Shown here in pieces: positions 2 to 61,112 of a stretch of DNA of 64,000 nucleotides (positions are counted from its first letter, which is position 1; each line of letters begins with the position of its first letter). Both the position numbers and the translations under genes were made by a program. Origin of the DNA: Thecamonas trahens ATCC 50062 (lineage: Eukaryota; Protista; Apusomonadida). The stretch lies in NCBI RefSeq assembly GCF_000142905.1, contig NW_013657651.1:124001-188000 (forward strand). Direction: 5' to 3'. The notes beneath the pieces were generated by a model that saw only the letters and a program-made list of their open reading frames with translations, was not told the origin of the DNA and searched no databases.

Positions 2-2740
2 CGCTCAGAGCTCGACGACGTCGAGCCGTGGCCTTTGGCCTCAGAGCAGCTCGACGGCCAGCCGAGCTCGATTGCACCTGGCGCGCTCCGCGCCTCGCTC
101 TCCAGCGATGCTCTCGCTGCCCTCAACCTGGACGATGTCGACAACTCGAGCGGCGAGGCGCAGACCCTGGTCCATCTTGCTGCGGCGTACGACATGGAGG
201 CGTTGGTGGTGGCGCTTGTCGGCCTCGGAGCCAGCTTTGATGCTCGCAACGGGCTTGGGTACACGCCGGTCGATGTCGCTGCTGGCGCGCAGTCGTCGTA
301 CGCGCTAGCAGCGCTGCTGGCGGTCGGCGCATCAGTGACCTGCGAGCTGAGCCGGGTCGAGGCAACACTGGGCGCAGTGGGTGCATCAGCGCGGCTGGTA
401 CACGAGCTTGTGACCCGACACGGCGCCGGTCCGCCTGGTGCCGGCGAGCTCAGCCTCGGTCCAGTTGCCTTTGAAAGCGCTATGGTCAACGCGCTCCTTG
501 CGCGAGACCATGAGCTTGTCCGGCTCCTCTTGGCACCGCCGATCTCGGTTGATGTCCATGCGACGGTAGAGTGGTCGGCAGAACTTCCCGTGCGATCGCG
601 GACGTCGCTGCTCCTGCTTGCGGCGCTCCTCGCTGACCACATAGCCATGATCGAGTTGCTACGTGCTGGAGCTGATCCGCGTGCGGCCGATGCGAACGGA
701 CTCACCCCTCTCCATGCACTGGTAGTCCAAAACTCGATGGCATCGCAGCGCGGAATCGACTTGCTTCTGGGCGCAGAGCGGCCGGCTGTCAACGCGACCG
801 ACCTCCACGGTCTGGCGCCAATCCATTATCTTGTCGACGCGCAGTTGTGGGATCCAGACTCACTGCGCGCTTTCAAGCCGGCATTGCGCGAAGCGCGGTT
901 GAACGCGCTGCTGTCAGCCGGCGCAGATCCCAACACGCCGACCAACTCGGGCGAGACGCCGCTCGGGCGCACGCTTATTGGCTCGGCCGGCTCGACTGAG
1001 CAGAGCGGCTTTCTTGCAGCACAGTCACGAATCGCCAGCATGCTGCTTCAAGCCGGCGCCGACCCTAATGCGCGTGATGCCGATGGGCGGACCATTTTGC
1101 ACCGTCTGGCGCATCTCGGCCTGGCTGCGGCAGCACTGTGGCTACTCGAGGCTGGTGCCGATCCGACTCTTGCCGACAGCACTGGAAAGACAACGCTCCA
1201 CGTCGCGGCTCGATCGGTAGCGACGTCAGAAATGGTGGCGACGTTCATTCCCGCGCTACTGCAAGCCAGCGGCTCGGCCCAGTACGTCAACTTGCGCGAC
1301 GGCGCGGGGCGGACGGCGCTGCACTATGCGGTGCTGGCCGGCTCGACCCCGACGATCCAGCTGCTGACTGCAGCAGGAGCGTCCGCGGTGAAGGACAATG
1401 ACGGCCTCTCGCCGTATGATCTGGTGCTGGACGCTGGCGAGGGCGGCGAGGCTGGCGGCGGGGGGAACGGGGCCAGCCCCGGGCCGGGTGGCCTCGGCAC
1501 CGTGCTAGTAGGCTCGGCAGCCGCCGGGCAAGAAGCGCGGCTTCGCGTTGCGCAGTGGCAGCGAATGTTTGATCAGCTCAAGGGTATGATCACGCTGGTA
1601 GTAGCAACGATCCAGCTGGCGGCGTTTGCGCTCGAGCTCGAGCTCGCGTGGCACTCGTCGGCGCAGGTGGCGGTGGACATTGCAGCTGCGCCACTACTTG
1701 CAGCCGCGCTGAGAAACGTCAACTTTGCGCTGCTGTTCTGGGCGGTGGCGAGCGGGCTCTTGCTCTTTACGCTCGCGTTCTGCTTCCGACGGTTCCGGCT
1801 TCACAAGATCGGGGCGGTGCTCACCTGGCTCTGCGCTGACATTCTGTTTGTCCCACTGCTGCGGGTGCTCGTTGCCAACTTTCGGTGCACCGATGGCGAG
1901 GTGGCGGCGGCGCCCAGCCAAGCCTGCTTTACAGGCTCGCACACGTACATGCTACTTGGCGCGACGGGGATGCTTGCTCTGTACATCCCGCTCACCTTTC
2001 GGCTTGTCCGACTCGACTTTCAACCCGAGGCCGTGTCCACGGCCTTCTCGCTCAACTGGGGTGCCGACGTGCTCCTTCTTAAGCGGTTCCGGCTGCACCG
2101 GATGACCAAGCGGGTCAACACCCGCCTGACAGACATCTTGCTCCACGCGCTCAAGCTTACACTAGTCTCAGTCTCGGTCATCATCTTTGACGAGATCGCG
2201 GTCCTGCTTGTTGTCTACATTGCCTTGTCGCTAGTCTACGTCACCGCCATCGCCTGGCGGCCGTCGTACGTCAGCCGGCGGGTCAACTCTGCCCAGCTCG
2301 GTCTCGCTGCGTCGACCGTTGGGGTTAACCTCGCCGCCGGCTCGGCATACCTCATCGATGACACCTCGTCGCTGGTCCCAGTCGCCGCCCTCGCCGCCGC
2401 CGTATTTGTCATCCCGCCGCTCGTTATGCTCGTCCACGCCAAGCTTTGCGTCACTTCGTCGGACCAGGAACGTGTCGAGCTCAACGAGGCGCTACAGACA
2501 GTCATCGAGACCGGCAACACGCTCACGCTTCTCCGCGATGGCGAGGTGGGGGCTTGCCCAGTGCCAGCGCGCCTGCCCAGTAGCTCGAGTGTAGCCCCCA
2601 AGACACAAAGCCCATTCATGATCCATCGCGCCTATGCTTGTCACGGCTTGGCCAGACTCGCCAGATGCAGCTGCATGTCGCGCAGGCGATCGATAACAGC
2701 CAGCGCGCGAACCTGCTGCTTCTCCAGCTCTGCCGTGTGA
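2..2740 (+). CDS. Ankyrin-repeat protein with C-terminal multipass (about 7-8 TM) membrane domain, 5'-partial
   Basis: Frame is open from base 2. Many ankyrin motifs (GYTPVDVAA, GLTPLHAL, GETPL, GRTILHRLA, GKTTLHVAA, GRTALHYAV) precede hydrophobic helices from about 1570-2440. One extra G in the G5 run at 2548-2552 would give ...EVGGLPSASAPAQ* with the stop at 2581-2583, removing the overlap with the next gene. Confidence 0.8.
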   Translation, partial: RSELDDVEPWPLASEQLDGQPSSIAPGALRASLSSDALAALNLDDVDNSSGEAQTLVHLAAAYDMEALVVALVGLGASFDARNGLGYTPVDVAAGAQSSYALAALLAVGASVTCELSRVEATLGAVGASARLVHELVTRHGAGPPGAGELSLGPVAFESAMVNALLARDHELVRLLLAPPISVDVHATVEWSAELPVRSRTSLLLLAALLADHIAMIELLRAGADPRAADANGLTPLHALVVQNSMASQRGIDLLLGAERPAVNATDLHGLAPIHYLVDAQLWDPDSLRAFKPALREARLNALLSAGADPNTPTNSGETPLGRTLIGSAGSTEQSGFLAAQSRIASMLLQAGADPNARDADGRTILHRLAHLGLAAAALWLLEAGADPTLADSTGKTTLHVAARSVATSEMVATFIPALLQASGSAQYVNLRDGAGRTALHYAVLAGSTPTIQLLTAAGASAVKDNDGLSPYDLVLDAGEGGEAGGGGNGASPGPGGLGTVLVGSAAAGQEARLRVAQWQRMFDQLKGMITLVVATIQLAAFALELELAWHSSAQVAVDIAAAPLLAAALRNVNFALLFWAVASGLLLFTLAFCFRRFRLHKIGAVLTWLCADILFVPLLRVLVANFRCTDGEVAAAPSQACFTGSHTYMLLGATGMLALYIPLTFRLVRLDFQPEAVSTAFSLNWGADVLLLKRFRLHRMTKRVNTRLTDILLHALKLTLVSVSVIIFDEIAVLLVVYIALSLVYVTAIAWRPSYVSRRVNSAQLGLAASTVGVNLAAGSAYLIDDTSSLVPVAALAAAVFVIPPLVMLVHAKLCVTSSDQERVELNEALQTVIETGNTLTLLRDGEVGACPVPARLPSSSSVAPKTQSPFMIHRAYACHGLARLARCSCMSRRRSITASARTCCFSSSAV

Positions 2741-21022: not shown

Positions 21023-21756
21023 ATGCTCAAGCGCGAGAGGTCGCCCGAGGGTGGTGAAGCCGGGGCTGGAGCTGGGCATGCGGCGGCGGGCGCGGTCGGC
21101 GAGGTGGGCTTGTCGGGCGCGGCGGGCGCGGTCNNNNNNNNNNNNNNNNNNNNNNNNNNNNNNNNNNNNNNNNNNNNNNNNNNNNNNNNNNNNNNNNNNN
21201 NNNNNNNNNNNNNNNNNNNNNNNNNNNNNNNNNAGGCGGCCGACGGCGGGGCGGAAAGGCGGCGGCGGCGGCGGCGGCGGCGCTGCCGGCAGGATTCTTT
21301 GACTCGGCGTCGGCGCAAGCAGTGGCGACGGGGGTGGCGACGAGCGTCGAAGCCGCCAAGAACGCCACCCTCGCCCAGTTTGTGGCCGACGTCGGTGCTG
21401 ATGTCCGCTCCGAGGCTGAGCGGGTGGCCGCCAAGGACGCCGCTCGTGCTGCCCGCCATGCCTCCGAGGAGGCTGCTCTCGCCTCGGGCCTCTCTGCCCG
21501 CCTCGCCCAGCTCAAGGGTCAGTACGGCGGCGGCCTCGGCGTCTCGCTTGACATCCTACAGGCCGCACGGGGCGCCACTGCCTCTTCCGCTGGCGCCGCC
21601 ACCACCGCCACAGAGCCCACAGACGCCACTGTACACGGCGCCGCGGGCGCTCCTGCGGCAGTTGCTGCGGACTCGGACGACTCGGACGATTCGGACGACG
21701 AGCTCGATCTGGGGAGCTTGACGCGGAACTGGCGGTCCAAGACAGCCGGCGCGTGA
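21023..21756 (+). CDS. ZNF830/CCDC16-like spliceosomal protein (spans an N-gap)
   Basis: ALPAGFFD motif at about 21280-21303, coiled-coil segment, and acidic tail DSDDSDDSDDE...NWRSK resembling the ZNF830 LPEGFFD and DWRxK motifs. Confidence 0.6.
21134..21233. other. Assembly gap (100 N)
   Basis: Run of N. Confidence 1.
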
Positions 21757-29352: not shown

Positions 29353-29501
29353 CCACCCTACCTGCTCGCTCCCGTAAATCGACTTGCATCGCCACTGGCA
29401 CCACGGGTTTGGCTCCGCGCCGCCACCGAGTCCCCCCACCCCCCCGTCCGCCACCGCCGAGCTGGGGCACCCCTCTCTCCGACATCGACATCTCAGACTC
29501 T

Positions 29502-32500
29502 ATGGCCACGAGTCAAGAACCAGAAACCCCTCCGGGACGCATCGATGCCTCTGTGTGCGGGTGGGATGAAGGCGTGGCGGTGTTCGGCGGCTTTGTTCGC
29601 GGAGGCGCTGCGTGCAACGAGGTGTGGGTCGGCCGGCCGGGCGCCTGGCGCTGCCTGTACTCGCCGCCGACGCTGGGCCTAGACCACCGGGCCCATCTCG
29701 ACAAGCTCATGGCCATGCTGCGTGGTCCGCGGCCGGCAGCAGCAGAGGTGCGGGCGTGGCTGGCCGATCCGCTCGCTGACGGCGGCGCCACCGCCAACGT
29801 GACCGCAGGCGGGCGGCTGGCACTGGTGGTGGCGCTCGCCAAGGAAAGCCCGGCGGCAGCTGCGGTTCTGGCTACTGCCCAAGACATCTCGCTCGATGCC
29901 GTTGACGCCGACGGGGTCTCGCCGCTGCAGGCTGCCATGGCCTCGCCGCATGTCGAGCTTGCGCAAATCGTCGCCGCACGCGCCGCACACGCCGCCCTTG
30001 CTGCTACGAGCGACGCGCCTCCGGATGCTCCGACATCACGGACGGCGGCCGCGGCTGCTGTCTCACCCGAGGGTGTGCTGTATGTGTGTGGCGGACGCGA
30101 GGTTGTTGAGAGGCGGATGAGCGTGCACGCCTTTGACCTCGCCCGGGGCGTCTGGCTGCCAATGCCGCGGGCGACACGTGACTCGCCGCGGAGCGTGGCT
30201 GGAGCTCGGGCACTGTACTTTGCGCCGCTCGACTCGGTATTTGTTCTCGGGGGACGATCTGTCATTGCCGAGGCAAGCGATGCCGGCGGGGTGTGGCGGC
30301 TCTCGCTGCGCACCCACGAGTGGCGCCGGGTCGAGCCTGCAAGCTCGTCATGGGACACACCACAGCTCTCTGACTATGCGCTCATCTATGTCGAGCGGCT
30401 AGGATTGGCGATTCTGAGTGGTGGAATGGATAGCACGACCGGCGTACCGAGTAGAAACGTGTATGTATTTGTTCCATGGGACGGAACACTTCACAAGCTC
30501 GACGCTGCCGAGCTCCCAGTCGGCATCATGCGGCATGCGGCGTGGATTGATGGATCGTCACTGGTGGTCGCCGGCGGCGTCTCCAGTGACGGCGAGCCGT
30601 ACCGGAGTTCGGCGATGCGGGTCTCGCTGGTCGATGCTGGCGGCGGAGTGTCGAGCAGCGACAGCGCACAAAGCGAGGCGTCTGCTGCAGTGGCGTGTGC
30701 CCTCGCGGGGCTTCGGGACGCCGGGCTTGTGCGCCTCGATGCGACGGGCGAGATGGTGGCGGTGTTTGGCAAACGGGCGAGCGGATACGTCGAGGCGGAC
30801 GCAAATGCGGACCTGGTCCTGGCCGCCCCACCCGTGGACGAGGCCATCCTGGCCACCCTGCAGCGGCATGCTGGAAGCCAGGGCGCAGTGTTTGGATGTG
30901 GCATGGCCGGACACATGCAGCTTGGCCTTGATCTTGAGCTCGGCATGATGGTGGGCGCACCAAGCCGCGTCGGCCACCTTCCACCTGTCCGCGCGATCTT
31001 TGCAAACGGCGTCGCGTCGTTTGCGCTTGACGCCGCGAGCGACAACGTCTACATGTGGGGTGCCAACTGTTGTGAGACAGCCACACTCGTTCCGCATCTA
31101 CGTGGCAAGCTTATCTCTAGCATCGGCGTCGGCGTGGTGTTTGCCGTGGCGGCATCGGCAGCAAGTGGGCGGGTCTACACGCTCGGAACCTCAATCACCG
31201 GATCACTTGGTGCAGCGCAGCAGCTCTCTCCGGATGCATGCGAGCTGACTGATTGTCCGTGGCGCCCGGCCGGGGTGAACCACGTCGACGCGGGCGCGCT
31301 TCATGCGCTGCTCCTCGACTCGGAGGGGCGTGTTTGGTCGTGGGGCGAGAATCCGCGAGGGCAGCTGGGCCGAGGCGGCGATCCTACAAGCCCGGCTCTT
31401 GTGGAGATCGGAACACGTGTCGCCGCTATAGCTGCCGGTGCGACACATTCTGTGGCGCTCTCCAGCGACGGGCTCGCGGTCTACGCTTGGGGCAGCCGTG
31501 ACGCGCTCGGATTGGAGGCACACACCGTCGAGCCGCTCGCGCTGGAGATTCCAGACGAGCTAGCACTGCCCGTGACACACGTAGCGGCTAGTGAGGCATC
31601 AATCATGCTCATCGATGCTCGCGGTGCCTTGTTTGCCTGTGGTAACCCCACAAACGGTCGGCTGGGTGTGGGCGAGGTCGATGCTGGAGTGACCGCCCTA
31701 GCCCTACAGCGGGTGACAGGCCTCGACGGTGTCAAGGTGGTCAAGGTGGTGGGCAACGGAGCGTATGGCTATGGCCATTGCTGTGCACTGGCAGACGACG
31801 GGCGGGTCTTTGTCTGGGGATCAAACGCGCAGGGTCGCCTGGGTCTCGGAAGCCAAGCGCCCGGCGTGGTTTGGACGCCATGTGAGCTGGCATGGGCAAG
31901 TGCACCCGGGAGCGTTTCGGTGACTGATATTGCAGCCGGCGGAGCGCATCTGCTGCTGGCGACCGAGACCAGACACGCAGCTGCATGCCCGGATCCCGAC
32001 AAGGGGAAGGAGGAGGCAGAGGAGGCGGGGCCGCTGGGCCCGCTCCTGGGCCAGCTCCCGACCGAGCTTCTGTTCCTCATCGTAGATGAGTCCAGTCTGG
32101 CCAGTATGCTGGCGCTCGGCGCAACGTGCCGGGCAATGGCGGCGATTGTCGACGACCCTCTGCTGTGGCGGCGGCGGATGGCGACAACGGCGTGGCCGGA
32201 TGGCGAAACGGTCCGTCACGCCATGCTCGAGTACGAGGCGCGCTACGGCGGGGCCTTCAACACGCCGTGGCGGACAATTTTCCGCGATGCGTACATTGAG
32301 GCGTTCAACCCGCGGTACCACGACCGACAGACGCTGGCGCGACGGCGAGCTGGGGCGCCGAGTACGGGTCTGGCCGACAGAGTCGGGTGGTTCAAGTCGA
32401 TGGTTCGCAAGACGCTTGGTCTGGCGCCGACTAAGCGGGATTCGTGTTTGTTTGTCGGCCTAGATGCTGCAGGCAAGACTTCGCTCTTGTACCTTCTCGC

Positions 32501-32936
32501 GAGAGGAGAGCTTATTATGACTATTCCGACCATCGGCTTCAACATCGAGGATCTCAAGGTACCCGCCGCCGGTGTGCTGACATGCTGGGACACCGGTGGA
32601 TGCGATCGGATCCGCCCGCTTGTGCGGCACTATCTCGTCGGCACTGGTGTGGTGGTCCATGTTGTGGCGGCCCAAGACGAGCGGCTAGTCGAGTCTGTCG
32701 ACGAGTTCCACAGCTTTACGCTCATGGCGGAAGCACTCGAGCCGCGGGTCAAGGTCGTGGTGGCGGTCCGCCAGCCTCCACCGGACCACCCACAGCCGCC
32801 GCGCTACAGCATGGATGACATCCGCAGTACGCTCCTGGCACGGTCGGCCATCGACCAGCTCCCGTGGCGAATGGTCGAGTGGTCGCACCAGGACGTGTCG
32901 CAGGTGTGGGACGCCCTGGCTTGGGCAATGGAGTGA
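29502..32936 (+). CDS. Kelch (with ankyrin-like insert) + RCC1 repeats + F-box + Arf-like GTPase fusion protein
   Basis: Kelch motifs VAVFGG, LYVCGG, VFVLGG, ILSGG, LVVAGG. RCC1 motifs HALLLDSEGRVWSWGENPRGQLG and DGRVFVWGSNAQGRLGLG. F-box LGQLPTELLFLIV...TCRAM...DDPLLWR. Arf GLDAAGKT, TIPTIGFN, WDTGGCDRIRPLVRHY. Single uninterrupted ORF. Confidence 0.88.
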   Translation: MATSQEPETPPGRIDASVCGWDEGVAVFGGFVRGGAACNEVWVGRPGAWRCLYSPPTLGLDHRAHLDKLMAMLRGPRPAAAEVRAWLADPLADGGATANVTAGGRLALVVALAKESPAAAAVLATAQDISLDAVDADGVSPLQAAMASPHVELAQIVAARAAHAALAATSDAPPDAPTSRTAAAAAVSPEGVLYVCGGREVVERRMSVHAFDLARGVWLPMPRATRDSPRSVAGARALYFAPLDSVFVLGGRSVIAEASDAGGVWRLSLRTHEWRRVEPASSSWDTPQLSDYALIYVERLGLAILSGGMDSTTGVPSRNVYVFVPWDGTLHKLDAAELPVGIMRHAAWIDGSSLVVAGGVSSDGEPYRSSAMRVSLVDAGGGVSSSDSAQSEASAAVACALAGLRDAGLVRLDATGEMVAVFGKRASGYVEADANADLVLAAPPVDEAILATLQRHAGSQGAVFGCGMAGHMQLGLDLELGMMVGAPSRVGHLPPVRAIFANGVASFALDAASDNVYMWGANCCETATLVPHLRGKLISSIGVGVVFAVAASAASGRVYTLGTSITGSLGAAQQLSPDACELTDCPWRPAGVNHVDAGALHALLLDSEGRVWSWGENPRGQLGRGGDPTSPALVEIGTRVAAIAAGATHSVALSSDGLAVYAWGSRDALGLEAHTVEPLALEIPDELALPVTHVAASEASIMLIDARGALFACGNPTNGRLGVGEVDAGVTALALQRVTGLDGVKVVKVVGNGAYGYGHCCALADDGRVFVWGSNAQGRLGLGSQAPGVVWTPCELAWASAPGSVSVTDIAAGGAHLLLATETRHAAACPDPDKGKEEAEEAGPLGPLLGQLPTELLFLIVDESSLASMLALGATCRAMAAIVDDPLLWRRRMATTAWPDGETVRHAMLEYEARYGGAFNTPWRTIFRDAYIEAFNPRYHDRQTLARRRAGAPSTGLADRVGWFKSMVRKTLGLAPTKRDSCLFVGLDAAGKTSLLYLLARGELIMTIPTIGFNIEDLKVPAAGVLTCWDTGGCDRIRPLVRHYLVGTGVVVHVVAAQDERLVESVDEFHSFTLMAEALEPRVKVVVAVRQPPPDHPQPPRYSMDDIRSTLLARSAIDQLPWRMVEWSHQDVSQVWDALAWAME

Positions 32937-33394
32937 GGCTTGCCGTGCGAAAAAGGCTGTCAGGCCGATGTGGGAGATGTTCGATAATCACACGCTTCCC
33001 GCCCTCACTACTCACACCCCATGCTTCCACACAGCAGGATAAAGACGTACCAACATCATTGCAGCATTTACACTACAATGTGGCTCTCTAGTAGGTGAGT
33101 ATGCTGTGTGTGTGTGGGCAACAGGAAGAGTAGGCAGATTTCCCGCCCAAAAAGAATGAGCCCCGCCCACTTTTCCCGCCCTTCGAAGGAGGCTCCTCCT
33201 ACCTTGGGGGGGTTTTTGGGCCGGGCCCCCCAAGCCCCTTTTTACAATTTTCCCCCCCCCCCCCCCCCCCCCCCCCCCCCACTAGTGTGCGAGTAGTACA
33301 CTCAAACACGTCGCCACTCTGGATATTGCAGCAGTAGCTTGCGATGGGGTGGGGGCTAGTAGTACAAGCGCAGATCGGGGCCGAGGACAGCATA

Positions 33395-33555
33395 TTTGTC
33401 TCATCTATATAATTATATATTATTAAATATATTAAAACATAATACTACAATGCAAAACACAATATTTATATTTTGCCTTCACAACGCACAATATTTTATA
33501 TAAATGTATTATTTTATGGTTGTTGACGGTCATTTAAGCTGTTTTGTCGCCATAT
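33395..33555. other. Isolated very AT-rich island
   Basis: e.g. ctatataattatatattattaaatatattaaaacataatac; contrasts sharply with the GC-rich surroundings. Confidence 0.9.
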
Positions 33556-33829
33556 TGATGATGCACACCCTGCCACCTGGCAGGACCTCTCTCAGCTCTC
33601 AGCCCTCCAGCCCTCCATCCTCCCCTCTTCTTTTGCAGAGCCCAGCGCGGAGCGATATAGGATGTACATTGTGCTCTCCAAAGCAGCCAGTCTACGATCT
33701 ATTGACTTTCTCTTGACAATCGACAACGCCCTCCTGCTCAGCCGCAGAGGTTTGCGCAAGAGAGCGGATTGCGCCCGAAGGCGAGGGTCCAAGAGCATGG
33801 GAGCACTGTGGAACACAAGTAGTGATGTG

Positions 33830-34951
33830 CTACATGTGGTTACCGGGCGCCCTATCTGCGGCAGCTGACTCTGTCGGCATCAGCACCGAAGAAACGTCGG
33901 GGATGACACCCCCGGACGCTATCGTCACCGACTCCAGAAGCTTGTTCAGCTCTTTGTCGTCCCGGATGGCCACCTGCAGGTGCCGCGGCACGATGCGCTC
34001 TTGGCTGTTGTCTCTGGCGGCAATGCTAGCCAGTTCGAGGAGCTCGGCCATGACATACTCAATCACTGCTGCAAGATAGACTGGCGCCCCGCTCCCAATC
34101 CGCGCTGCATACTGTCCCTGCCGCAGCATGCGGTGCGTCCGCCCGACGGGAAAGATGAGTCCAGCTCGCTTCGACCGCGCTACCGCTGGTGCATCCATCT
34201 TCCCACTGGGACCCACGAATGCATCCGCTCCTCCGTCAGCGCCGCAATCGTTTGCGCCCTCGTTGGCATTGTCACGTTTGCCGCCGCCTCCACCCGCTTC
34301 AAGCGCCGCCCGGATCCCGCCCACCTCTCGCGTCTTCCACGCCCTGCTCAACACCACAGTCACCTCAGGAACCGAAAAGTCGGGATGAAGCTCGTTGATC
34401 CGTGGGCGCATCCACTTGGAGAACGCGGCCCAGGCATCCGAGAGCGACAGCTCGGCCACCATTGCGAGCACCTCGGCCTCGAGGTCCGCGGTCGATGCCA
34501 CCGCATTCTCCGCCACCGCATCCACCGTATCCACCTCATCTACGCTGTCTCTTGCGCTCTCTGCTTGCTCTGCCTCGCTGCTTGTCGCCTCGCTAGCGTT
34601 TGCAGGCGAGGCGTTACGCGGCTCCGACGAGGTGTACCGCATAATGGCCGTAGTTGCATTCGAGACAGCATGCTTAGCCAGCTCTCCTGGCAGCAGCAGA
34701 CGGACTGCAGTCTGGATCTCGCGCGACGTTATGGTGGCCCTCTTGTTGTACTGCGCGAGCTTGCCAGCTTCTGTGGCGATCGACGCAAACAGGTCGTTGG
34801 CCATCGCGTTGCAAATGGCCATCGCCCCATTCGAAATGCCGGTCTGAGGGCCAACCTGCTTCAGAACCTTGTAGATGTACGACGAGAACACCGCCGCCCT
34901 GTCCTTGGCCCTGCCTCCACACTTTTTGTCCTGGCCCCCATCCATGTTCAT
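33830..34951 (-). CDS. Fused histone H2B - acidic/HMG-box-like linker - histone H2A (doublet histone, about 373 aa)
   Basis: H2B fold [12 protein letters not shown]...[25 protein letters not shown] (34951-34625) and H2A fold [13 protein letters not shown]...[12 protein letters not shown]...[20 protein letters not shown]...GGVIP (about 34180-33830) lie in one stop-free frame. Confidence 0.9.
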
Positions 34952-35090
34952 GTCTGCCGAGTCTTGCCGAGTTGCCCTGTGTCGTGTTGCGCCTCTCTGA
35001 CACGCACCACTTACAGGGAAGAGGCATGCCGGCTGCCCAGTGCCTACTAGCCGCCTGAAAAGGAAAACAAAGGTGCCGACCAGTCTATCA

Positions 35091-35152
35091 GCCGACCAGC
35101 CGACCAGCCGACGAGCCCGACGAGCCCGACCAGCCCGACGAGCCCGAACAGC
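35091..35152. repeat. Tandem 8-9-mer repeat (CCGAC[C/G]AGC), about 7 copies, in the 265-bp divergent spacer between the histone doublet and MED14
   Basis: gccgaccagccgaccagccgacgagcccgacgagcccgaccagcccgacgagcccgaacagcc. Confidence 0.8.
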
Positions 35153-35216
35153 CAACCAACCCCCACACTCCACCCCCCCCCCCACCCCTCCATCCCCCCC
35201 CCTCCCCCCCCCATCC

Positions 35217-38200
35217 ATGTCCACACCCGACCAGCCAGTGGCCCTGGCGGTCCTCGCCACACAGCTGGTCCGGACGGCATACACGGAGCTGACGTCCATC
35301 GTGGCTGGCGTCGCTGCGGCACCCGACGAGGCGCGCAAGCGGGCCCTACAAGCGTACTGCACCCTTGTCCGCCACCGCATGCTCCGCCTCGCCGCCTTGC
35401 TGCAGTGGGCGCATGCCCAGTGCGGGCGCGCAGACACCGACGCCCTTGTCGCCAAGCTCCGCGGGACGCACGCCGCCTTTGAGCGCACCGCCGAGAGCCT
35501 GCACTACGCCGGCATGACCCACCGAGCCCTTCTCGCTCCGCCGCCTCCCGTTGCGCCCGCCTTGGACCTTCTTGCAACAGGCTCGTTCCGCGGCATGCCT
35601 GCCGCCGTTCTCGACGGCTCGCGCCCGCGCCCGCCGCTTGACGTCCAGACCGCCGCCATCGACCTTGTCCACTCGCACGTCACGGCTGCTCTGCTGGACG
35701 AGCCACGCCCGCAGGGTGTCACCGTCGCGCTTGTTGCCGGCGCCCTCGTCATGACCGCTCCTGGCCAGTACATCCTCTCGCTTACTCTCGACGTCTCGCA
35801 CCTCGCCCGGCGTGAGCTCGAGGACGATGCCCCGCCCGCGCCGCCGCGCTCCTGGCTCATCGCCGACCTCGAGCTGGACGTACGGACCCAGAGCTCTGAG
35901 GGCTCACTTGCGCGCGTCCGCCTTGACCCACACCAGCACGAGATCCTCAAGGGCCATGTCTTTACGGCCATGGCCTCCGCACCTGCCCCGCTCCTTGCCG
36001 CCCACGACCTCCTCGGCCGGCTCTGCCTCCATCTCCGCATCGACGTCCTCTTTGCCCAGGCCGGGGCCCTCCGCATGCTCTGGTGGGGCTCCTCGGTCGC
36101 ACCCATCCGCGCCGACGAGGGCTTTGTCACTGCCTACTGGGCTTTGTCGGCAAAGACCAAGCTTGTCATCCGTCCGCAGGCCTCCAAGCTCATGGCCCGC
36201 TTCGACCCGCCCATTCCGGCCGCCCGCCCGGCCCTTGACGCCGCCATCTCCCACATTGATGTCTTCAACGCTTCCTTTGAGGCACTTCTCATCTCGGCCA
36301 TCAACATTCATGTTTCCCATGTTCTCGACGCTGCCGGAGCCGCTCTTCGCGCCCGCGCCGGTGTCGCTGCAACTGCCACCAGCAGCCTCAGCTTTGTTGT
36401 CCGCGCCCGCGTTGTCTCGCGGACCGACCTGCTTCAATCCGGCCTCTCTTCGGCCCGCATGGTCCTGCACTGGGACCCGATGCTGGCGCCGGGCGGCATG
36501 CTGGAGCTCGCCGTCCGCCTGGTCGACGGCGCCTTTGTGGCTTCGGACTCGCTCTCGGTCAGCAACGCCCGCGTCCGCGACCTCGTCGCAGCTCTGCCAG
36601 CGCTCCACGAGCTTGGCACGTGCCCGGTCGATTCTGCCCCGGTCCTTGCCGCCGTCCGTGCCCTCGAGTCGGGCCTCGCCATTGATGCCGTCGCTGCCGC
36701 CGCCACCACTGCCGGACTCATTGTCGAGTCGGCGCCGTGGCCTTCAGCCGCGCCGGCCGTCGTCACCCAGCTCCTCAGCGACCACGACACTATCCTCTTT
36801 TGCCGCCTCCCGCAGCATTCGCACCTTGCGTACATCGTCCTTGCCCTCGACGGGACCTCGTTTGCCAAGTTCTGGCTCTTGGTAGTTGATCACAGCACAG
36901 ACGCCGCTACACTCCCGGTCATCTCTTTTGGCCCGCTGCCGAGAGATGCGCTCGACATGGCCCGCGCCGCGCTCACCCCCGCCGTCACCCGCCTGGGCCG
37001 TGGCGGTCCGGCCTCGCCGGCCACTCCCGGCAAGCGCCCAAGCGCCCACGGCCCTGCGCTCTCGCCGTACTCGGCCAAGCGCCGCAAGCGGCTTGACGCC
37101 TCTCCGGCCTCGATTGGATCGGAGACCACGCCGCAAGCCCAGGCTCCTCCTGTCGCCAAAGGCCCCGTCCCAATGGACGTCGTCACGCCGGCCCGGCCGG
37201 TGGCCAAGCCGTCGTCTGAGCCGGCGTCACTCCTTGCTCGGGCCGTCGACGCCCTCCCGCACCAGGACCTTGTGGCCTTTTTCGCTGCTCTCCTCACCCA
37301 AGTTTCACGCTGCGTCCACGACCGCGTCCTCGACTACCTCCTCAAGCAGCAGCAGGTGCTTGTCAAGGAGTGCTCCGACGGCTTTATCCTCCACATCAAC
37401 TGCGGCTCGCTGCCGGCCACCTCGATTGTCCTTCGCCTCGCGCCGTCGGGTGCCTCGTGGTCGGTGGTCGTCGCCCTCGCCAACGCCCCGTTTGATGTTG
37501 TTCTCCCTGACGGGCCCTCGCTCGATCTCCCACACATCAAGACCTCGCCGTCGGGCAAAACCATCTTGCTTGACTATGTCAACGGGCCGTCGTCGGTCTC
37601 TAGCCTCCTCGCTGACCTCAAGGGCATCATCCGGCTAGCCGAGCTCTCAACCCAGGTCGCGCCGCTGCTTTCCAACGCGGCAGACCTTGCCTCCCACTTT
37701 ACCGTCTTTGCCCACACCTACTCGTGTCTCTGCCTCAAGGTCGCCCGTGAGCTGTATCCGGTGCCCGGCGGGAGCCCACAGTCGGCGCTCTATGTCGTCA
37801 TCTCGCTTGACATTTCTGGCTTTGGCCTCTCGTTTGAGCCGCCGTCTCCGATCCTGGAGGCTTTTGTCCCGTTTTACACCGCGCTCCTCAACCGGCAGCG
37901 TGCGCTGGACGTTCTGCTCTCGACCCTCGCTCGCGCACTTCCCATCCTCGCCCAGCTCCAGGCCCTCCGCGCAAGCCTCCCGCGCGTCACCCTCGTCCCG
38001 CGCTCATGCACCTCGGCGAGGCTCATCTTCCCGGCGTCGACTGCCAACGCCACTTCCGCCGCCCCGGCGCTAGACTTGCGGTTCTGCCCGGGCGGCCGCC
38101 TCTTCCTCTCCGACGGCGCCATCTCCATCTTTGACCCAGCGGATGCCGCGCCCGCCCTTCCACCGCCACCACCGCCTCCAGTCAAACCTGTAGTCTCTGC

Positions 38201-41548: not shown

Positions 41549-42043
41549 NNNNNNNNNNNNNNNNNNNNNNNNNNNNNNNNNNNNNNNNNNNNNNNNNNNN
41601 NNNNNNNNNNNNNNNNNNNNNNNNNNNNNNNNNNNNNNNNNNNNNNNNNNNNNNNNNNNNNNNNNNNNNNNNNNNNNNNNNNNNNNNNNNNNNNNNNNNN
41701 NNNNNNNNNNNNNNNNNNNNNNNNNNNNNNNNNNNNNNNNNNNNNNNNNNNNNNNNNNNNNNNNNNNNNNNNNNNNNNNNNNNNNNNNNNNNNNNNNNNN
41801 NNNNNNNNNNNNNNNNNNNNNNNNNNNNNNNNNNNNNNNNNNNNNNNNNNNNNNNNNNNNNNNNNNNNNNNNNNNNNNNNNNNNNNNNNNNNNNNNNNNN
41901 NNNNNNNNNNNNNNNNNNNNNNNNNNNNNNNNNNNNNNNNNNNNNNNNNNNNNNNNNNNNNNNNNNNNNNNNNNNNNNNNNNNNNNNNNNNNNNNNNNNN
42001 NNNNNNNNNNNNNNNNNNNNNNNNNNNNNNNNNNNNNNNNNNN
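41549..42043. other. Assembly gap
   Basis: Run of N. Confidence 1.
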
Positions 42044-49538: not shown

Positions 49539-50451
49539 NNNNNNNNNNNNNNNNNNNNNNNNNNNNNNNNNNNNNNNNNNNNNNNNNNNNNNNNNNNNNN
49601 NNNNNNNNNNNNNNNNNNNNNNNNNNNNNNNNNNNNNNNNNNNNNNNNNNNNNNNNNNNNNNNNNNNNNNNNNNNNNNNNNNNNNNNNNNNNNNNNNNNN
49701 NNNNNNNNNNNNNNNNNNNNNNNNNNNNNNNNNNNNNNNNNNNNNNNNNNNNNNNNNNNNNNNNNNNNNNNNNNNNNNNNNNNNNNNNNNNNNNNNNNNN
49801 NNNNNNNNNNNNNNNNNNNNNNNNNNNNNNNNNNNNNNNNNNNNNNNNNNNNNNNNNNNNNNNNNNNNNNNNNNNNNNNNNNNNNNNNNNNNNNNNNNNN
49901 NNNNNNNNNNNNNNNNNNNNNNNNNNNNNNNNNNNNNNNNNNNNNNNNNNNNNNNNNNNNNNNNNNNNNNNNNNNNNNNNNNNNNNNNNNNNNNNNNNNN
50001 NNNNNNNNNNNNNNNNNNNNNNNNNNNNNNNNNNNNNNNNNNNNNNNNNNNNNNNNNNNNNNNNNNNNNNNNNNNNNNNNNNNNNNNNNNNNNNNNNNNN
50101 NNNNNNNNNNNNNNNNNNNNNNNNNNNNNNNNNNNNNNNNNNNNNNNNNNNNNNNNNNNNNNNNNNNNNNNNNNNNNNNNNNNNNNNNNNNNNNNNNNNN
50201 NNNNNNNNNNNNNNNNNNNNNNNNNNNNNNNNNNNNNNNNNNNNNNNNNNNNNNNNNNNNNNNNNNNNNNNNNNNNNNNNNNNNNNNNNNNNNNNNNNNN
50301 NNNNNNNNNNNNNNNNNNNNNNNNNNNNNNNNNNNNNNNNNNNNNNNNNNNNNNNNNNNNNNNNNNNNNNNNNNNNNNNNNNNNNNNNNNNNNNNNNNNN
50401 NNNNNNNNNNNNNNNNNNNNNNNNNNNNNNNNNNNNNNNNNNNNNNNNNNN
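49539..50451. other. Assembly gap
   Basis: Run of N. Confidence 1.
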
Positions 50452-60571: not shown

Positions 60572-61112
60572 NNNNNNNNNNNNNNNNNNNNNNNNNNNNN
60601 NNNNNNNNNNNNNNNNNNNNNNNNNNNNNNNNNNNNNNNNNNNNNNNNNNNNNNNNNNNNNNNNNNNNNNNNNNNNNNNNNNNNNNNNNNNNNNNNNNNN
60701 NNNNNNNNNNNNNNNNNNNNNNNNNNNNNNNNNNNNNNNNNNNNNNNNNNNNNNNNNNNNNNNNNNNNNNNNNNNNNNNNNNNNNNNNNNNNNNNNNNNN
60801 NNNNNNNNNNNNNNNNNNNNNNNNNNNNNNNNNNNNNNNNNNNNNNNNNNNNNNNNNNNNNNNNNNNNNNNNNNNNNNNNNNNNNNNNNNNNNNNNNNNN
60901 NNNNNNNNNNNNNNNNNNNNNNNNNNNNNNNNNNNNNNNNNNNNNNNNNNNNNNNNNNNNNNNNNNNNNNNNNNNNNNNNNNNNNNNNNNNNNNNNNNNN
61001 NNNNNNNNNNNNNNNNNNNNNNNNNNNNNNNNNNNNNNNNNNNNNNNNNNNNNNNNNNNNNNNNNNNNNNNNNNNNNNNNNNNNNNNNNNNNNNNNNNNN
61101 NNNNNNNNNNNN
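60572..61112. other. Assembly gap
   Basis: Run of N. Confidence 1.

Follow-up and report, generated by a model that had tools for sequence, protein, structure and literature searches.

A candidate natural single-chain H2B-H2A histone gene in the genome of the protist Thecamonas trahens

Can a cellular genome encode H2B and H2A as one polypeptide? Cellular core histones are separate polypeptides, and fused H2B-H2A chains are a hallmark of giant-virus chromatin that figures in debates on nucleosome evolution. The question is raised by a minus-strand open reading frame (ORF) in a 64,000-nucleotide stretch of the Thecamonas trahens ATCC 50062 genome (contig NW_013657651.1, positions 124,001 to 188,000; hereafter the window, whose numbering is used throughout), in which an H2B-like histone fold is followed by an H2A-like one. 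We conclude, with a probability of roughly 0.6, that this ORF is a genuine and intact nuclear gene of T. trahens encoding a natural single-chain H2B-H2A histone, a tethered variant dimer that originated by fusion in the host. Giant-virus doublets are already known; a natural H2B-H2A doublet in a protist nuclear genome would be new. Our literature search found no paper naming the T. trahens gene or its accessions, and none on a protist nuclear H2B-H2A doublet.

The frame is open from 35488 down to a TAG stop. Translation from the ATG at 34951 gives 373 residues, and a second ATG at 34945, which is the GenBank start, gives a product of 371. The product begins with a short tail, continues as a full H2B (residues 18-109) and a connector, and closes with a full H2A, docking domain included (residues 252-373). 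Pfam detects two Histone stretches in the ORF (overall E value 1.4e-28) together with Histone_H2A_C at residues 333-364 (E value 3.5e-11), and both folds align without gaps to canonical and doublet histones, in the order H2B then H2A. These results agree with an initial annotation, a reading of the sequence alone, that had described H2B and H2A in this order within one intronless ORF of 373 residues; the joining stretch, which it put at about 148 residues, measures 150 between the fold envelopes (residues 105-254). Because this is a plain genomic ORF, no splicing is needed for the fusion.

The best database match is 100% identical and is deposited as “histone H2A” (XP_013756892.1 / KNC50347.1 / A0A0L0DDB8), a 300-residue protein on a 406-kb scaffold. 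We could reproduce the model of XP_013756892.1 exactly, as an exon at 34294-34945, an intron at 34081-34293 and an exon at 33833-34080. The 213 nt removed as intron code for part of the Gly-rich segment of the connector and for the end of the H2A N-terminal tail, alphaN, alpha1 and L1, with canonical motifs. Because in the right frame this stretch encodes the missing third of the histone fold, we judge the intron to be false. As read from the sequence, the splice almost certainly reflects faulty annotation, and the product has 373 (or 371) residues; the GenBank/UniProt entry is probably both mis-spliced and mis-named, with the name “histone H2A” concealing the H2B half.

The codon-position pattern of the connector resembles that of its neighbours. 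Its GC content at codon positions 1, 2 and 3 is 0.69/0.55/0.70, compared with 0.72/0.54/0.71 and 0.70/0.54/0.77 in the flanking genes, and the 3′ flank falls to about 0.44 GC without codon periodicity. The doublet frame alone is open across the connector, the two other frames holding 4 and 7 stops, and by our own estimate the chance of 148 codons staying open at such GC in the correct frame is roughly 1%. The region 33000-36000 contains no Ns, the nearest assembly gap beginning at 41549. A mis-join in the linker, which the initial annotation had named as fatal to its reading, appears very unlikely in this N-free region, where the connector is in frame and coding-like.

The H2B half is 61-65% identical to canonical H2B, has the core H2B fold and signature region, and shares with canonical H2B an identical stretch of 25 residues within the fold. 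The end of its alphaC is altered (E113N, G114A, K116T and K120R in human numbering), such that the canonical AVTKYTSSK reads AIMRYTSSE and the ubiquitylation lysine K120 is gone. The H2A half has a canonical H2A fold with 60-68% identity to canonical H2A, reads AGLIFPVGR for the canonical AGLQFPVGR, and fits PDB constructs of canonical H2A better than those of H2A.Z (258 vs 200-211 bits); its C-terminal tail is short, with neither the K118/K119 pair nor an SQ motif. Over both folds the doublet is 63-66% identical to cellular canonical pairs, 63% to a doublet from Nolandella described below and 58-60.5% to doublets found in viral context, in keeping with the earlier description of the halves as eukaryote-like though diverged.

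In the alignment, the H2A half retains the arginines R17, R20, R29, R32, R35, R42, R71, R77 and R81, which we take to be DNA contacts, residue roles being assigned by standard nucleosome numbering (reportedly that of Luger et al. 1997). Lysines have been lost on both sides, namely K36, K74, K75, K118 and K119 from H2A (K74S, K75Q, K118T, K119E) and K57, K116, K120 (to R) and K125 from H2B, and both lysine-rich tails are gone too. The acidic patch has lost two of its eight residues (H2A E91K, H2B E113N), and changes at near-invariant residues comprise H2B H49G, E113N, G114A and K116T and H2A G67S. With 15 lysines in 373 residues the whole doublet has a net charge of -6, compared with +33 for canonical fish H2B plus H2A, +30 to +35 for two viral doublets and +17 for an engineered yeast construct.

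Structure prediction points in the same direction as the alignments. An AlphaFold2 model of the doublet, made with an alignment of 98 other doublets, has a mean predicted local distance difference test (pLDDT) score of 80.5, with about 98 on both folds, and matches crystals of engineered single-chain H2B-H2A proteins (6W4L, 8YJM_G, 6K00_D, 7YBF_A) at target-normalised template modelling (TM) scores of 0.96-0.99 and root-mean-square deviations of 0.9-1.7 Å. On the strength of this match, the H2B-like fold and the H2A-like fold that follows it are predicted to pair within one polypeptide as an ordinary H2A-H2B dimer. The initial annotation had proposed both the dimer and an AlphaFold check; the check was run on the doublet alone, and its model favours the intramolecular dimer.

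The connector, which is poor in Lys and Arg, falls into three parts, an acidic stretch (net charge -11), a helical module (0) and a Gly/Asp stretch (-3). Tandem DNA repeats (9 nt x3, 17 nt x2.4) at 34513-34594 on the minus strand lie within the acidic part, which suggests that the connector has partly grown by repeat expansion. The helical module resembles an HMG box: the Pfam HMG box (PF00505) matches at an E value of 1.3e-3 with 19.6 bits, which is below the 25.4-bit cut-off and leaves it outside the family; in a PDB sequence search all eight matches at E < 10 are HMG-box proteins (E values 0.2-1.4; best HMGB1 box B, 0.2); and Foldseek of a separate connector model returns nothing significant, the top match being UBF1 HMG box 4 (E value 3.5). 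These three signals agree, each insufficient alone, and the module is possibly a degenerate HMG-box remnant. A word-indexed search with residues 108-258, covering 5.8 billion proteins whose length is comparable, found no homologue except the gene itself. The acidic connector with its weak HMG-box-like module was absent from the initial annotation, as were the mis-spliced GenBank model and the net acidic, lysine-poor character of the protein. The features of the locus are collected in Table 1.

Table 1. Coordinates of the doublet gene, its parts and its upstream region in the window
Feature	Position	Strand	Description
Complete H2B-H2A doublet CDS (coding sequence)	33830..34951	-	373 codons plus TAG (33830-33832), from ATG at 34951
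H2B N-terminal tail	34901..34951	-	residues 1-17, net charge +1; without canonical lysine-rich tail
H2B histone fold and alphaC	34625..34900	-	residues 18-109; Pfam Histone 18-85; pLDDT about 98
Connector start	34526..34624	-	residues 110-142; acidic, Ser/Ala-rich, low model confidence, short tandem DNA repeats
Connector helical module	34295..34525	-	residues 143-219; predicted helices 143-167, 170-188, 194-206(-219), pLDDT 70-82
Partial HMG-box match	34331..34435	-	residues 173-207 = box positions 7-41 of 69, helices 1-2 only
Connector Gly/Asp/Ala-rich segment	34202..34294	-	residues 220-250, predicted disordered; pLDDT <50 at 208-244
H2A part	33833..34198	-	from Met252 (ATG 34196-34198): short N-terminal tail, alphaN, fold, docking domain, C-terminal tail; pLDDT about 98
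“Intron” of the GenBank model	34081..34293	-	213 nt, GT..AG borders, in frame, stop-free
Divergent promoter region, doublet/MED14	34952..35216	.	265 bp between the two ATGs

How does the doublet compare with known fused histones? Its best PDB sequence matches (E value 1e-75) are engineered H2B-H2A chimeras of the same order (6W4L from Xenopus, 7DLX from yeast, 8YJM chain G and 6K00 chain D). These are man-made and basic, with truncated tails and a short linker or none, whereas the T. trahens doublet is natural, carries a 150-residue acidic insert and has a net charge of -6. Marseilleviridae and other giant viruses are well-documented bearers of natural H2B-H2A doublets (PMC8357426, PMC12297534, PMC5704553, PMC11222145, PMC9145170), and those of Marseilleviridae have been demonstrated to assemble into nucleosome-like particles (PMC8357426, PMC12297534). 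Marseilleviridae doublets (Marseillevirus D2XB49; Melbournevirus) resemble the T. trahens protein in being natural chains of H2B then H2A with two paired folds, the pairing being predicted for T. trahens. They are encoded by viruses, packaged in virions and accompanied by an H4-H3 doublet partner, whereas the T. trahens gene sits among host genes and lies neither in a Nucleocytoviricota genome nor in an integrated viral region.

Closer in sequence are doublets of uncultured giant viruses (P0109, P0116 and P0100), which share the order of the halves and several of which have acidic connectors; unlike the T. trahens doublet they are strongly basic, and their lysine-rich tails and C-terminal KK site are still present. 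Three metagenomic doublets with usable context sit in giant-virus-like contigs, which carry Pox_A32 ATPase, DUF5832 and IF4E genes and dense ORFans. Doublets in viral context reach as much as 78% identity with a cellular H2A, and they fit published surveys of viral histone repeats (PMC11222145). The eukaryote-like metagenomic doublets were located in contigs L001 (573-1376 and 10001-10804), L002/L003 (10001-10744) and L004 (2767-3654), and in L001 a second gene with two histone folds, of 267 residues, lies 9 kb away.

A fused chain also turned up in a protist transcript. The EukProt transcript EP01128_P012839 (P0095) of the amoebozoan Nolandella sp. AFSM9 contains a complete 406-residue ORF with H2B, an acidic linker of 56 residues, H2A and a C-terminal HMG box. 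This box is genuine (Pfam E value 2.6e-20), and the protein is the only other HMG-bearing doublet among 99 scanned. Like the T. trahens doublet it is one ORF of H2B then H2A, with a connector of net charge -11 and an overall charge near neutral (-1); it differs in that the HMG box is C-terminal rather than in the connector, and its connector has no detectable similarity to that of T. trahens. A BLASTP similarity of the Nolandella doublet to the helical module (3 of 30 identities on H2B alpha1, E value 0.39) was rejected as chance. In its H2A half the Nolandella protein shares 77% identity with Ceratiomyxa (Amoebozoa) H2A, and this closeness to an amoebozoan H2A suggests that such fusions arise independently in cells; the transcript may be a separate cellular fusion, or it may come from a virus in that culture.

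A 2026 review describes cellular double histone fold proteins, among them a class restricted to animals whose members share at least 60% identity with core histones (PMC13088155). This HSIH-DHF class is credited there to Miyake et al. 2026 and is given for Chordata, Arthropoda, Nematoda and Mollusca only. By the description in PMC13088155, its members are cellular entries in which an H2B-like fold precedes an H2A-like one, with high core-histone identity, as in T. trahens, and the T. trahens doublet itself (63-66%) exceeds the 60% bound. We suspect that most animal double-fold matches are gene-model merges, being long and in many cases having extra H3/H4, both orders, or the label “partial” or “low quality”. 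Many animal “H2A/H2B” proteins of 230-630 residues combine H2A, H2B and sometimes H3/H4/H1 in both orders; such multi-histone entries may be merged models of clustered genes and could inflate published counts of cellular double-histone-fold proteins. In the 99-doublet alignment, three proteins carry ubiquitin domains and one (P0123) carries UBC and RING domains; P0123 is the engineered PDB construct 8UQ9, and database “doublets” therefore include artificial sequences.

An exhaustive phmmer search gave 14,538 matches, with two-domain proteins dominating the top. The order H2B then H2A was present in 124 of 263 retrieved proteins. Linkers were analysed in 107 proteins of this order, where a median of 16 residues separates the halves, and the 150 residues of the T. 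trahens doublet are the longest once gene-model merges are set aside. The search with the H2A half produced matches of 62-71% from a wide range of eukaryotic groups, with flat scores of about 158-166 bits, and the canonical H2A of T. trahens was not among its best 120. Pattern scans of IMG/VR and JGI metagenomes revealed no orthologue of the doublet; the JGI/IMG scans gave only a canonical pair that is no nearer to the doublet than other histones are (61-62% identity) and one distant match. That canonical pair (L006; ERZ778023 NODE-49611) is arranged head-to-head on a GC-rich contig, at 94-693 (minus strand) and 809-1453 (plus strand); a long C-terminal extension of its H2A is rich in Lys and ends in SQTI, and L006 shares an 11-residue stretch with the H2B of the doublet. 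The gene had been called lineage-specific at the outset, and as far as these data go it has no counterpart in any other organism searched; on its sequence it appears to be an old or fast-evolving orphan.

Trees were computed with FastTree from 258 rows, for H2A from 61 rows (LG+C20) and for the concatenated halves from 42 rows x 202 columns, in each case without the canonical H2B and H2A sequences of T. trahens. None of the three gives the doublet a resolved position. In the H2A tree, every row that lies closest to the doublet by path is a singlet. The doublet pairs weakly with the long branch P0136 (83/70), which we set aside because long-branch attraction may be at work; the contig context of P0136 is uninformative. 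In an approximately unbiased (AU) test, the grouping of the doublet with viral-context doublets, as against named eukaryotic H2A, was not rejected (p = 0.43); a control in which the viral doublets alone form a clade gave p = 0.40 and is equally indecisive, so that the test has little power either way. The trees that the initial annotation had called for thus exist for H2A and for the concatenated halves and include eukaryotic and viral rows, with no resolved placement of the doublet.

The genomic neighbourhood is that of an ordinary eukaryotic locus. The doublet gene is head-to-head with MED14 (Pfam Med14, E value 1.4e-16; first ATG at 35217), and the region between the two genes contains a (GCCGACCA)x10 microsatellite and a 40-nt C-rich (poly-C) tract at 35075-35212. 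Of the 16 large ORFs spread over the window, each is either an ordinary eukaryotic gene or lacks a match; they include an RCC1/Kelch/F-box/Arf protein, gelsolin-LIM, RabGAP-TBC, a biotin carboxylase-type carboxyltransferase, a kinesin, a P4-ATPase, a MADS-box factor, and FHA, MFS, ankyrin and LRR proteins, which bears out the earlier placement of the gene among housekeeping genes next to MED14. No giant-virus hallmark gene was seen in the window. The adjoining ORF (29409-32936, plus strand, 1175 residues) has an unusual multidomain architecture of Kelch, RCC1-like and F-box-like domains with a C-terminal Arf-family GTPase. The window also contains N runs at 21134-21233, 41549-42043, 49539-50451 and 60572-61112; apparent islands of foreign DNA at 40-42, 48-52 and 60-62 kb, with low GC and long ORFs lacking Pfam matches, were rejected as assembly gaps, and the Pfam-less long ORFs on both strands at 49-53 kb are explained by the N runs there.

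The locus does not have the layout of replication-dependent histone genes, since both folds follow one another within a single ORF, which has MED14 as its divergent partner. Rfam finds neither a Histone3 stem-loop at E values up to 1 nor any other RNA family in 33000-35400, and tblastn with three H2B-H2A doublets brings up no further sequence resembling H2A or H2B anywhere in the window; nor is an H4-H3 doublet seen there, H3 and H4 not having been queried. A canonical head-to-head H2B/H2A pair of T. trahens, KNC47362/KNC47386, with 198 bp between the genes, is given elsewhere in the genome by a published supplement (10.1101/2021.11.30.470311). With this separate canonical pair, the doublet is an extra copy rather than the sole H2A/H2B of the organism. 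The histone tables given for T. trahens in 10.1101/2021.11.30.470311, so far as accessible, list neither the doublet gene nor its peptides.

Where did the doublet come from? Most likely, host-type H2B and H2A copies fused in the apusomonad lineage and then diverged fast, a scenario that we favour because of the host-like composition, the host neighbours and the slightly higher identity to cellular histones. It is rather unlikely that the gene is instead a domesticated Nucleocytoviricota doublet, acquired already fused and eukaryote-like, ameliorated to host composition and later extended by the long connector. Such a viral source would be at hand, given that single chains of H2B then H2A are abundant in metagenomes (the 124 of 263 above), that giant-virus-like contigs hold all three whose context could be used, and that doublets of this kind can be very eukaryote-like (the 78% to a cellular H2A) and repeatedly show the same order and acidic linkers. 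The window, however, is free of viral genes and host-like in GC and codon-position pattern, no related locus emerged from the IMG/VR pattern scan, and identity to viral-context doublets is below that to cellular pairs. The AU test permits a viral grouping, but its control is just as permissive, and the nearest H2A-tree neighbours are singlets. Foldseek identity to the doublets of Marseillevirus, pithovirus and clandestinovirus is 14-24%, in alignments that span the connector gap; with about 20% over such a gapped alignment for Marseillevirus, a specifically Marseilleviridae-type source is unlikely.

Whatever its source, the gene might not yield one chain in vivo: a separate short-tailed H2A could be made from an internal promoter and Met252, alone or beside an H2B-connector product, or the GenBank splice could be real and give H2B plus a truncated H2A. 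The GT..AG borders of that splice would allow this, and so would the Gly/Asp segment just upstream of Met252, which is atypical in its GC at third codon positions (0.54). We nevertheless hold it clearly unlikely, because H2B has no stop of its own and an H2B-only mRNA would therefore be stopless, and because the “intron”, which is in frame and stop-free, codes for H2A alphaN, alpha1 and L1 with their canonical motifs, such that its removal would wreck a fold modelled at a pLDDT of about 98. Still more improbable in our judgement is a silent or decaying fusion relic, a young pseudogene with no function, to which the divergence of about 35% from every known histone, the loss of conserved lysines and of several near-invariant residues, the failure of the IMG/VR and JGI scans to find an orthologue, and the missing histone 3′ stem-loop (Rfam, 33000-35400) would lend themselves. 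The 373 codons are, however, free of stops and frameshifts in a region where the other frames of the connector are interrupted 4 and 7 times, neither fold has indels, the changes avoid conserved columns, and the gene has a compact divergent promoter with MED14. An assembly mis-join of separate H2B and H2A genes is extremely improbable: there are 4 N gaps of the scaffold inside the window, but more than 6.5 kb separates the gene from any N, and the junction sequence is unique, in frame and coding-like.

Several observations weigh against the single-chain histone that we prefer. An exact look-up of the 373-residue product finds no record, and no copy of it from transcripts or metagenomes is on record. 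Met252 stands 12 residues ahead of the RAGL motif, at the expected start of an H2A. The doublet lies on a long branch in a polytomy in both the H2A and the concatenated trees, with no supported placement among cellular histones, and the scans that found no orthologue count here as well. The acidic net charge and the lysine loss could mean that DNA binding as a histone is lost. The consensus residue of the doublets is kept at 82 of 95 well-conserved columns versus 56 of 133 variable ones, a comparison that is confounded, as variable columns match a consensus less often anyway, and that is no substitute for the ratio of nonsynonymous to synonymous substitution rates (dN/dS). Since changes avoid conserved columns and there are neither indels nor stops, the sequence pattern argues for constraint on the doublet.

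If the single-chain reading is right, we hypothesize that the doublet would act as a covalently tethered 1:1 variant H2A-H2B dimer. With the DNA-contacting H2A arginines and the docking domain kept, it would sit on the H3-H4 tetramer and on DNA, and it presumably could not carry tail acetylation or H2A/H2B mono-ubiquitylation. The connector would exit at the H2B C-terminus and re-enter at the H2A N-terminus, forming an acidic, partly helical loop of 150 residues. Speculatively, this loop might project from the nucleosome face and alter fibre packing or factor binding, and could thereby keep fibres open or recruit factors; alternatively, it might fold back over the DNA-binding surface of the dimer as a built-in chaperone-like shield, which is conceivable because known H2A-H2B chaperones bind via acidic stretches that bear aromatic anchors. 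Bulk chromatin would still draw on the canonical head-to-head H2B/H2A pair. The full proposal, that a free-living cellular eukaryote expresses a nucleosome-entering single-chain H2B-H2A with an acidic HMG-like module between the folds, is tentative, and we think it somewhat more doubtful than probable.

Taken together, if a free-living relative of animals and fungi has such a fusion in its nuclear genome, readable without any gene-model splicing, then cells explore the doublet architecture too, and in an unusual design that is acidic, lysine-poor and without ubiquitylation sites. If true, T. trahens would hold a cellular counterpart of the giant-virus doublets, either an independent re-invention beside the Nolandella fusion or the trace of an exchange between viruses and apusomonads. 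The gene also bears on whether hosts have given rise to doublets more than once or whether doublets pass between viruses and their hosts, and on what a built-in acidic or HMG-like connector does to the handling of the H2A-H2B dimer. It would also provide an experimentally tractable cellular system for the effect of tethering H2A to H2B on chromatin.

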